Source: Macrostomum hystrix | Lineage: Eukaryota; Animalia; Platyhelminthes | Length of the DNA stretch: 64,000 bases | Direction: 5' to 3' | Assembly: GCA_950097015.1 (NCBI GenBank) | Contig: CATNEN010000025.1 | Span: 9,424,001 to 9,488,000, forward strand | Shown: positions 30,401 through 32,781 of the stretch, in pieces | Layout of the letters: every line of letters begins with the position of its first letter | Numbering within the stretch: the stretch's first letter is position 1 | Program-made: the position numbers and the translations under genes | Notes under the pieces: generated by a model | What the model saw: the letters and a program-made list of their open reading frames with translations, nothing else | Told to the model about the DNA's origin: nothing | Database searches by the model: none

Positions 30401-32781
30401 TCAGTCTATGGACTGGGTGGGGGACGCCACAAAACCCTTAATTGCCCCAGCTAATGCTGGGAAATTTAAAAGCTGTCTCATCGTCATTTATTGTATATTT
30501 TTATTGTGCCTTGGAGGTTTACCCTCACATGTAAATTGTAAATTGCACGACAAGCCCCCAAGCCTTCTCTCCGAGGCCGCGCCCCAAATGAACGTGGCCT
30601 CTGAATAAACTATAGCGTTTGTATTTTTAAAGCGTCGTGATTATACGAGCGTAAAACGGTGGTTGCTATGCTATCGATTGGATAGCAAATCAGCACTCAC
30701 TGTGTCCTGCTCCGCAGAGTTAAAGAACAGCGTCATGGAGGCCAAGGCGCAGCGTAACAAAGAGCGCATCGAAGAAGTGCTTAACGAGATCAAAGAGGAG
30801 TTCTTCGTGGAGGACATCTATGCGGAAATCGAGCCGGACATTCGCAAGGCGTCGGAGGTCTATCGAAGATTCGATAGAATCGACAAGATCACAATTAAGC
30901 CGTTGAATCTGGACGACAAGTCCAAGCTTGAGTTGGCCTCCTACGCCAGCCCGGACCCGTGCGTGCACGCCACCTGCATGTCCGTCCTGCTAGTGATGGG
31001 CTACTATGAGAAACGAACTCGGGTGAGCTGCTCACCGATGTCACTGCTAATCCGTTAAGCCTAAATCCCCTGTTTCAATTCGCTAATCCTAGTTAGTCCG
31101 CTAATTTCAATTCGCTAATCCTAGTTAGTTCGCTAATTTCAATTCGCTAATCCAAGTTAGTTCGCTAATTTCAATTCGCTAATCCAAGTTAGTTCGCTAA
31201 TTTCAATTCGCTAATTCTAGTTAGTTCGCTAATCTCAATTCGCTAATCCAAGTTAGTTCGCTAATTTCAATTCGCTAATTCTAGTTAGTTCGCTAATCTC
31301 AATTCGCTAATCCTAGTTAGTTCGCTAATTTCAATTCGCTAGTCCTAGTTAGTCCGCTAATTTCAATTCGCTAATTCTAGTTAGTTCGCTAATCTCAATG
31401 CGCTAATCCTAGTTATTTCGCTAATCTCAATTCGCTAATCTAACTAAAGACCTTTAACCGAACGAAAGCCTGCTCTGAAAAAAGTCTAAAACGATGCAGA
31501 AACTGCAACATTCTTCAGAAGTGGCGCCGTTGCCAGCCGCTGATCCGGGCGCTGAAGGTGGACGACTTCAACCGGCTGAGTCCTAGCTCCGTGAATCCGT
31601 CCATTGCGGCCAGGGCGCGCGAGCTCGTGTCCAACCTGGACATTAGGGAGGTGGCTTTGAAGAGCGCCGCCGCGGCCGCCTTCTTTGACTGGGTACGATA
31701 TTGTACATCCGGGAGATCAGGGCAAATATTAGATTCCTCACACTGAATTTCATACACTGAAACTGGATTAGTTCCTCACACTGAGGATTTGGGAACAGGA
31801 TTAGTTCCTCACACTGAGGATCTGGGAACAGGATTAGTTCCTCACACTGAGGATCTGCATGGAACAGGGTTAGTTCCTCACACTGAGGATTTGGGAACAC
31901 GGTTAGTTCCTCATACTGAGGATTTGGGAACAGGATTAGTTCCTCACACTGAGGATTTGGGAACAGAGTTAGGTCCTCACACTGAGGATTTGGGAACAGG
32001 ATTAGTTCCTCACACTGAGGATCTGGGAACAGGATTAGTTCCTCACACTGAGGATCTGCATGGAACAGGGTTAGTTCCTCACACTGAGGATTTGGGAACA
32101 CGGTTAGTTCCTCATACTGAGGATTTGGGAACAGGATTAGTTCCTCACACTGAGGATTTGGGAACAGGATTAGTTCCTCACACTGAGGATTTGGGAACAG
32201 GATTAGTTCCTCACACTGAGGATTTGGGAACACGGTTAGTTCCTCATACTGAGGATTTGGGAACAGGATTAGTTCCTCACACTGAGGATTTGGGAACAGA
32301 GTTAGGTCCTCACACTGAGGATTTGGGAACAGGATTAGTTCCTCACACTGAGGATTTGGGGACAGAATTAGTTCCTCACACTGAGGATTTGGGAACAGGG
32401 TTAGTTCCTCACACTGAGGATCTGGGAACAGGGTTAGCTCCTCACACTGAGGATCTGGGAACAGGGTTAGTTCCTCACACTGAGGATCTGGGAACAGGGT
32501 TAGAACGCAACAAACGGGGGCTTTTGTACTCTCGTTTGCATGACGCTCAGTATCCTGTATGCAATTTCCCAACTCAGACCCTCAACGTAGTGAAGGCTGT
32601 CGGCGATCTGAATGACGACGATGACACGAAGCCGGCGACCATCAAGAAGCAGAAGAAGCTGCTGCGTGTCTCGGCAGAGGAGGACGCTGACCTGGACTGG
32701 GAGGACAAGGGCAAGCGGGCCCAGACGGCTTCCAGCGGTTCCAAGAGCGGCAGGGGTCGCGGCAGGCCAGCAAGGAAATAA
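24483..32781 (+). CDS. KY/hillarin/LTD-1-like transglutaminase-fold protein (predicted inactive), 1242 aa, 7 exons, with C-terminal dynein-stalk MTBD-like domain
   Basis: Exons 24483-24985, 26612-27269, 28191-29907, 30095-30262, 30718-31022, 31519-31692, 32578-32781. All GT-AG, phases 2,0,1,1,0,0; sum 3729 nt = 1243 codons. KY-family motifs LEKVRAAFEW, LVRGYKKG, WFAVLIDGEWRFVDAHWG, YFLTDP...HFPERPEWQLL, and three P..G.Y.L.I beta-sandwich repeats. Confidence 0.88.
25105..25640. repeat. Intronic pyrimidine-rich minisatellite, 14-bp unit (ttatctgtcctccc)
   Basis: About 38 copies in intron 1 of the KY-like gene. Confidence 0.97.
27821..28145 (+). mobile_element. tRNA-derived SINE, full-length copy 2 (in KY-like intron 2)
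   Basis: Same A-box/B-box head (ggtggcagagcgg...aagttcgattcc) and body as 8919-9270. Confidence 0.85.
29945..30080. repeat. Intronic minisatellite, 15-bp unit (tcttcccctgtctca)
   Basis: About 9 copies filling KY-like intron 3 (29908-30094). Confidence 0.92.
30525..30602 (-). mobile_element. SINE fragment (same family), reverse orientation
   Basis: gcacgacaagccccaagccttctctcc...gcgccccaaatgaacgtggcctc is the reverse complement of the SINE body. Confidence 0.75.
31070..31445. repeat. Intronic minisatellite, 32-bp unit (caattcgctaatcctagttagttcgctaattt)
   Basis: cgctaatcc at 31081 and 31113; about 11 copies in KY-like intron 5. Confidence 0.95.
31765..32502. repeat. Intronic minisatellite, 33-bp unit (ctcacactgaggatttgggaacaggattagttc)
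   Basis: About 22 copies, two with a 3-nt insertion, in KY-like intron 6; gives 11-aa repeat ORFs on both strands. Confidence 0.97.

Follow-up and report, generated by a model that had tools for sequence, protein, structure and literature searches.

In a 64,000-nucleotide stretch of the genome of the flatworm Macrostomum hystrix (GenBank assembly GCA_950097015.1, contig CATNEN010000025.1, positions 9,424,001 to 9,488,000 of the forward strand; hereafter, the window), exons 5 to 7 of a predicted seven-exon gene almost certainly encode a diverged, genuine homolog of the microtubule-binding domain (MTBD) of the dynein heavy chain, by both descent and fold. The exons upstream of this module encode a protein related to KY (kyphoscoliosis peptidase), and the two parts probably belong to a single gene. 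The overall explanation that we favor, with a probability of about 0.5, is that a KY-like protein carries the MTBD as a passive docking foot. To our knowledge, the dynein MTBD has been treated as confined to dynein motors; a conserved family that possesses the foot and a stalk stub and has dropped the motor would imply that the MTBD can evolve and shuffle independently.

Homology to the Dynein MTBD

The exons of the window were searched individually, and a contiguous relative, the 250-residue protein P0001 of Macrostomum lignano, served as a stand-in for the joined product; it is the closest protein relative of the window gene. A large sequence search seeded with exon 5 returned eight matches, the alignment of which then matched 141 proteins in a word search. 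Three alignments were used as profiles: the gene's own subfamily (A5, 8 rows), a family of motor-less proteins without this subfamily (A6, 30 rows), and the two families combined (A4). One product of the exon 5 search, P0002, was dismissed as spurious, being a bacterial GA-like repeat protein that matched a 30-residue helical stretch 23 times.

Against the hidden Markov model of A6, exon 5 scored 36.9 bits over profile positions 6-70 and exon 6 scored 20.7 bits over positions 93-133, with the best of 300 shuffled sequences reaching 5.7 and 1.6 bits, respectively. Subfamily A5 and family A6 were aligned by hhalign over 131 columns with a probability of 99.9 % and an E-value of 1e-34. When the A6 profile was compared with all PDB sequences, each of the 41 matches at E<=0.001 was a dynein heavy chain at its MTBD, the best being that of yeast cytoplasmic dynein (E 9.7e-10), and the combined A4 profile gave a best E-value of 1.2e-11. 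With A5 alone, 14 of the 15 PDB matches were dynein MTBDs, at E-values of only 0.03-0.35. In a language-model neighbor search, PF12777, the Pfam MT family that together with structures 3ERR, 6RZB, 6KIO, and 5AYH represents dynein in our comparisons, was carried by 27 of the 30 nearest Atlas clusters. A preliminary description of this DNA, made from the sequence alone, had proposed a resemblance to the dynein MTBD; the profile matches to dynein MTBDs in the PDB and the exon scores far above those of shuffled sequences bear this out.

Searches with shorter queries were less productive. Single-exon Pfam scans gave no dynein match, and a phmmer search of the PDB with exon 5 found nothing; given how short and how diverged the individual exons are, such a result is understandable. 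The word search with exon 3 gave no match, that with P0001 matched only P0001 itself, and exon 5 alone was uninformative against the Atlas. The rows for TraF, NCD2, and DUF7939 in the single-exon Pfam scans were dismissed as chance, and the only phmmer matches of exon 6 in the PDB, artificial alphaRep repeat proteins, were discarded as an artifact of a summed 15-residue motif.

Fold and Likeness to Dynein

The AlphaFold2 model of residues 62-212 of P0001, built with the A4 alignment, had a predicted local distance difference test (pLDDT) score of 90.1 and a predicted template modeling score of 0.78. It consists of a six-helix bundle (H1-H6) that is preceded by a long helix and followed by a shorter one, the two being paired in the manner of a stalk stub. 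In Foldseek, ranks 1-37 were occupied by dynein stalk or MTBD entries, except for chain 7jtk_C at rank 16, with template modeling scores of up to 0.68 and a best E-value of only 1.4e-3. VIA-align placed the model closest to the mouse dynein MTBD (3err_A; Z 14.9, root-mean-square deviation 3.3 A, 146 residues), followed by 5ayh (Z 14.8), and gave Z 12.7 for the microtubule-bound chain 6rzb_C. Thirteen chains scored Z 7.8 or more and the next, unrelated chain scored 3.9; all 13 come from microtubule-based machines (11 from dynein, one from a radial spoke, and one from the intraconoidal microtubules of Toxoplasma). The last two have an MTBD-like fold in the absence of a motor, namely 7jtk_C of radial spoke 1 of Chlamydomonas (residues 435-590, Z 11.5) and 9ya2_L of Toxoplasma (residues 1207-1457, Z 7.8), and neither showed a detectable sequence link to the family in the A4 and A6 profile searches of the PDB. 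An earlier AlphaFold run on a shallow alignment of 11 rows, with a pLDDT of 45-60 in the domain, was not used for the fold; the exon 4 region of P0001 had a pLDDT of approximately 90 in that model. Separately, the first row of an Atlas shape search was a 751-residue molluscan cluster with the same fold (template modeling score 0.76), in which 16 % of the members carry EF-hand_6 and which represents a further architecture for the module.

The module has the fold and helix order of the dynein MTBD and, like it, is carried by an antiparallel helical stub. In common with dynein, its core retains a Glu and a Pro where H1 begins, the Trp of H3, and the Ser and Trp of H6. Two prolines at the domain boundaries are described as universally conserved in the dynein MTBD (PMC6629372, citing Imai 2015), and the first of these is invariant here (YASP in the window). 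Dynein possesses an AAA+ ring, a linker, and a long stalk, whereas the window protein lacks all three: its stub comprises approximately 25 residues on the side of the first coiled-coil helix (CC1) and approximately 12 on the side of the second (CC2), and no AAA+ match was found in Pfam scans of the exons of this gene. The structural suggestions of the preliminary description thus fared well. The stalk-like helical segment that it placed before the domain corresponds to the long helix that pairs with the shorter following one, the proposed comparison by AlphaFold and Foldseek leads to dynein MTBD structures, and the lack of an AAA ring agrees with upstream exons that are KY-like and with a stop codon 67 codons past the domain.

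Helical bundles often yield middling structural scores, and the single-exon Pfam and PDB searches contained no dynein match, so that a chance or convergent resemblance with no descent from dynein has to be considered. It is, however, extremely improbable, because the profile matches only dynein MTBDs, with E-values down to 1e-11 and over the whole domain, the Z score of 14.9 far exceeds the 3.9 of the best-scoring unrelated chain, and the dynein core residues of H1, H3, and H6 are retained.

Exon Joins and Gene Structure

The module is encoded by exon 5 (30718-31022), exon 6 (31519-31692), and exon 7 (32578-32778, with the TAA stop codon extending to 32781), all on the + strand. Exon 5 has its acceptor cag at 30715-30717 and its donor gtgagc at 31023, and it encodes a helical region, a CC1-like helix, and H1-H2 of the MTBD; the portion used in the domain alignments begins at approximately 30831. 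Exon 6, between the acceptor cag at 31516-31518 and the donor gtacga at 31693, encodes H3-H6 and ends at the conserved Trp. Exon 7 follows the acceptor cag at 32575-32577 and encodes a short CC2-like helix (TLNVVKAVGDL), an acidic patch, the conserved EEDADLDWEDKG motif, and a basic RG tail. Introns 5 and 6 are both in phase 0. When read in series, the three separate translations reproduce exactly the peptide that the preliminary description had obtained by splicing, and the exons lie where it had placed them, with GT-AG borders and fitting phases.

The joins of exons 4 to 7 are supported by two sources outside the window. P0001 is collinear with part of exon 4 and with exons 5, 6, and 7, at identities of 66 % for exon 5, 72 % for exon 6, and 62 % for exon 7, and the exon borders of the window map precisely to YEKRTR|KW and FFDW|TLNVV in this protein. 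In addition, a metagenome scaffold of 928 bp (L004) contains exons 5, 6, and 7 together with the last part of exon 4; its introns, of 61-67 nt, have positions and phases identical to those of the window, and exon 7 alone matches it with an E-value of 1e-8 (tblastn). The intron after H2 (...EKRTR) occupies a position common to the window, L004, and many genomic fragments, in many of which it is visible as a read-through V after ...EKxxK/R. A C-terminal motif, EEDADL(D/E)WEDKG, is common to exon 7 of the window (32650-32778), residues 225-237 of P0001, and positions 770-815 of L004; in the window, the basic RG tail after this motif has an RGRP core (GRGRGRPARK).

The whole gene spans 24483-32781 on the + strand and has 3,753 nt of coding sequence (1,251 codons); all six of its introns are of the GT-AG type, with compatible phases at every join. 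Exon 1 (24483-24985, +) begins with the ATG at 24483 and encodes the N-terminal region and the first half of a degenerate transglutaminase-like core, with the donor gtgagt at 24986 in phase 2. Exon 2 (26612-27269, +; acceptor cag at 26609-26611, donor gtgaga at 27270) encodes the second half of this core and the first Ig-like_KY domain. Exon 3 (28164-29907, +), which follows the acceptor tttttttaag ending at 28163, encodes Ig-like_KY domains, followed by a helical region rich in E, R, and Q and by a charged, RS-rich linker of low complexity; its donor gtaagt at 29908 is in phase 1. Exon 4 (30095-30262, +; acceptor cag at 30092-30094, donor gtgagt at 30263) is in phase 1 at both ends and encodes the helical segment before the module; it is collinear with the start of P0001, and its end is conserved in L004. 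An AATAAA polyadenylation signal can be read at 32808-32813 (+), 27 nt past the stop codon.

Minisatellites occupy several introns. Intron 1 contains one with 14-bp units; the program TRF identified a 32-bp array in intron 5 (31073-31440; 11.5 copies, 93 % matches) and a 33-bp array in intron 6 (31761-32503; 22.3 copies, 92 % matches), and the latter gives rise to spurious long repeat open reading frames (ORFs) at 31643-32572 (-) and 31789-32781 (+). These intronic arrays account for the fragmented ORF track of the gene and for its long spurious repeat ORFs. Introns 2 and 4 harbor inverted copies of a dispersed repeat (27897-28008 and 30476-30592) that bracket exons 3 and 4 and are complementary over 55 nt at 91 % and over 52 nt at 73 %; a similar peptide signature occurs near 61.6-62.0 kb. 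Inverted repeat pairs that flank exons can favor back-splicing or exon skipping.

Probable Fusion to a KY-like Protein

Vertebrate KY is a protein of the muscle Z-disc that functions as a cytoskeletal scaffold. It shares with the window protein the Ig-like_KY domains and the transglutaminase-like core, and we know of no MTBD-like C-terminus in vertebrate KY. In the window, the Ig-like_KY domain (PF23265) was matched by exon 3 in two stretches (E 1.8e-15) and by exon 2 (E 2.8e-9), both above the 27-bit cut-off, and exon 2 also matched KY exons of the gastropod Batillaria (E 5e-27, tblastn). Transglut_core (PF01841) gave no Pfam match at E<0.1 when exons 1 and 2, each holding part of a core that intron 1 interrupts, were searched separately. 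By eye, the core has GLWFAV at what is presumably the catalytic H-x-W motif of transglutaminases, with Leu in place of His, and retains the Asp (VDAHWG). The core of Batillaria reads GEWNAV at this motif, the position of the catalytic His being substituted there as well.

The link between the KY-like part and the MTBD depends on the join of exon 3 to exon 4, which is predicted from splice signals, reading phase, and the gene layout in mollusks. The exon 3 donor is of the consensus type (gtaagt) and matches the exon 4 acceptor in phase. In two gastropods, Elysia marginata (BMAT01007500.1) and Batillaria attramentaria (JACVVK020000338.1), as in the window, KY-like exons lie upstream of an MTBD-like module on the same strand; the gastropod modules differ in being only about 20-25 % identical to that of the window, and the public gene models are either split or devoid of the KY exons. 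The annotated KY gene of Elysia, which carries a weak Transglut_core and Ig-like_KY, closes with an exon that shares 48 % identity with the module's N-terminal helix; the remaining part of the module is found further along that strand under a separate annotation, "kyphoscoliosis peptidase." A fragment of a mariner-type transposase (Transposase_1, E 5.8e-8; positions 8572-9200 of the Elysia sequence L002) lies in the intron after this exon and appears to have led to the annotation of one KY-MTBD gene as three models. In Batillaria, uncalled exons with a remnant of the transglutaminase core and Ig-like_KY (E 3e-28) precede the module gene by 4.6 kb. The mention in the preliminary description of similar C-termini in lophotrochozoan proteins was therefore sound, since such proteins exist and KY exons lie just upstream of the module in Elysia and Batillaria. 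At a further locus (L006), the upstream space is too small for KY exons.

An alternative is that there are two genes, of which the KY-like one would terminate within exon 3 or downstream of it, leaving exons 4-7 as a small stand-alone MTBD gene for a product resembling the proteins of approximately 200 residues in mollusks and Ciona. Such stand-alone members do exist, including a RefSeq model in Ciona, and the model of P0001 in M. lignano starts with a Met inside exon 4. However, the consensus donor of exon 3 is in phase with the exon 4 acceptor, the single in-frame Met of exon 4 (KKMKP) lies upstream of the residues at which P0001 starts, the annotated KY gene of Elysia extends into the N-terminal helix of the module, and the KY exons of Batillaria are found just upstream on the same strand. 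We therefore regard two separate genes as unlikely, and a single gene that comprises both the KY part and the MTBD as probable. The tree of the module, in which the flatworm subfamily forms a long separate branch, would allow for a fusion that arose only once, and it neither shows nor excludes such an origin.

A Family of Motor-less MTBD Proteins

The family to which the module belongs is found in mollusks (bivalves and gastropods), the annelid Ridgeia, flatworms, and Ciona, examples being P0016 (Mytilus coruscus), P0021 (Tegillarca), P0023 (Ciona LOC100182150), and P0033 (Ridgeia). Most of its proteins are 200-350 residues long and have only a helical N-terminus before the domain, and most are labeled uncharacterized or hypothetical. 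The family is not named in public annotation, and none of the 141 family proteins bears a precomputed Pfam domain. A nearly invariant surface pattern, with Q at the position of dynein R3337 and the sequence SAGAATFYVW, characterizes the family, and the subfamily of the window gene is distinguished from the other members by YEKRTRKW(K/R)RCQP and by the conserved EEDADLDWEDKG tail. Five members from scallops, the pearl oyster, and one Logan run (P0028, P0029, P0032, P0036, and P0037) have an acidic core with a charge of -5 to -7; at least two acidic-core members carry an N-terminal MG..C motif (MGGACSSS and MGCGTSKQ), which suggests a lipid anchor. Searches of the literature found no description of a combination of KY and MTBD or of motor-less MTBD proteins, in keeping with the statement in the preliminary description that no functional description was known. 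A dedicated profile such as A4 would allow annotation of the family, which is missed by the PF12777 gathering score.

Proposed Function

With no AAA ring available to change the register of its stalk, the module would act as a passive, ATP-independent docking foot that would anchor the KY-like scaffold, together with its partners, to a structure built on microtubules, be it microtubules of the cytoplasm or doublets of the axoneme. This proposal is based on the observations that all solved chains with the fold come from microtubule machines and that H3 of the window module is basic (WRRCQPLIRALK), within a core domain of net charge +4. That the docking target is tubulin itself or a microtubule-based assembly is, in our estimate, slightly short of an even chance. 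More tentatively, it may be speculated that an old family of motor-less dynein feet, present in at least spiralians and tunicates, serves as stand-alone or fused anchors to microtubules or the axoneme, and that in its flatworm-gastropod branch the foot attaches a KY/transglutaminase scaffold devoid of catalytic activity to microtubules, which would constitute a new class of microtubule-associated proteins derived from the binding domain of dynein.

Several observations weigh against this explanation. The basic dynein residues on H1, H3, and H6 that contact the microtubule, which we take to be K3298, K3299, R3337, R3342, and R3382 of the mouse protein, with a numbering that fits the A5 alignment, were mapped through alignments of the hidden Markov models, and correspond to D, D, Q, R, and L in the window and mostly to K, Q, Q, G, and D in the family. 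Two of these residues, K3299 and R3337, are mentioned by PMC6629372. For the role of candidate microtubule linker that the preliminary description had suggested, most of the basic residues of dynein would therefore be missing. At the second boundary proline (CGP in dynein), the window and 29 of 30 family members have Ala. Across the family, the core carries a net charge of anywhere between -7 and +6, so that no shared basic face toward the microtubule is apparent. The PF12777 gathering score was not reached by any window exon, by P0001, or by any family member, the best of which scored 16.7 bits against a cut-off of 24, and for this reason the family is without Pfam annotation; the Pfam MT check that the preliminary description had proposed thus yielded no match at this score for the exons or P0001. 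The fold model represents P0001 of M. lignano and not the window's own protein, and P0001, starting inside exon 4, does not show the link to KY. Finally, a scan for X-box (RFX) sites revealed none near the promoter (approximately 24.4 kb), and the window contains six matches against 4.2 expected; because of this absence and a count near chance, a ciliary-gene promoter is unsupported. Since most of the basic contact positions are changed, microtubule binding would follow from ancestry and not from conserved contacts, and binding by the window module appears doubtful from its sequence.

These changes also suit a rival explanation, according to which the module is a true MTBD homolog that has lost tubulin binding, its fold being re-used as a protein docking module in an axonemal or cortical complex to which the KY-like protein is recruited via a partner. 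Four of the five basic contact positions of dynein are changed in the window protein, the family has a nearly invariant surface pattern of its own, and several of its members have strongly acidic cores. Moreover, protein partners are known for the MTBDs of dynein as well, such as light chain 1 in structure 6l4p, and the radial-spoke chain 7jtk_C shares the fold. On the other side, each solved chain with the fold belongs to a microtubule-based machine, both the window domain and its H3 are basic, and no alternative partner is known. Partner docking of this kind is a possibility to be taken seriously, but one that we consider less probable than the passive docking foot.

A ciliary setting is hinted at by larvae of Babylonia, in which a KY-annotated protein drops together with a radial-spoke head protein at the regression of the ciliated velum (PMC5908917); the hint is weak because mollusks have many KY paralogs. 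If the passive docking foot proves to be correct, the KY-like scaffold family, which in vertebrates is associated with muscle Z-discs, would be linked to microtubules or cilia in spiralians, and, provided that the module does bind microtubules, the protein would represent a new type of microtubule-associated protein. A foot devoid of the AAA ring would also offer a natural test case for the relationship between stalk register and binding affinity. If microtubules are not bound, the MTBD fold would have been re-used for another partner, which would likewise be new.

Other Features of the Window

A perfect palindromic X-box-like site (GTCACCATGGCAAC) occurs at 10192-10205, inside an ORF (9849-10514, -) that resembles a multi-pass membrane protein. 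At 40269-41621 (+), an intact single-exon ORF of 450 residues contains DUF3504, the C-terminal part of Phage_integrase, and a QRICH1 domain, and resembles a Crypton-type tyrosine-recombinase element or a domesticated gene derived from such an element. An exon for a fibrinogen C-terminal globular domain (E 3.9e-29) lies at 43037-43567 (+). C2H2 zinc-finger genes are located at 12450-14968 (-), with very long runs of Q, A, G, and H at 13145-14968, and at 59583-63133 (+). Further minisatellite arrays with long repeat ORFs on both strands are present at 18295-19626, 25101-25634, and 35601-36085.

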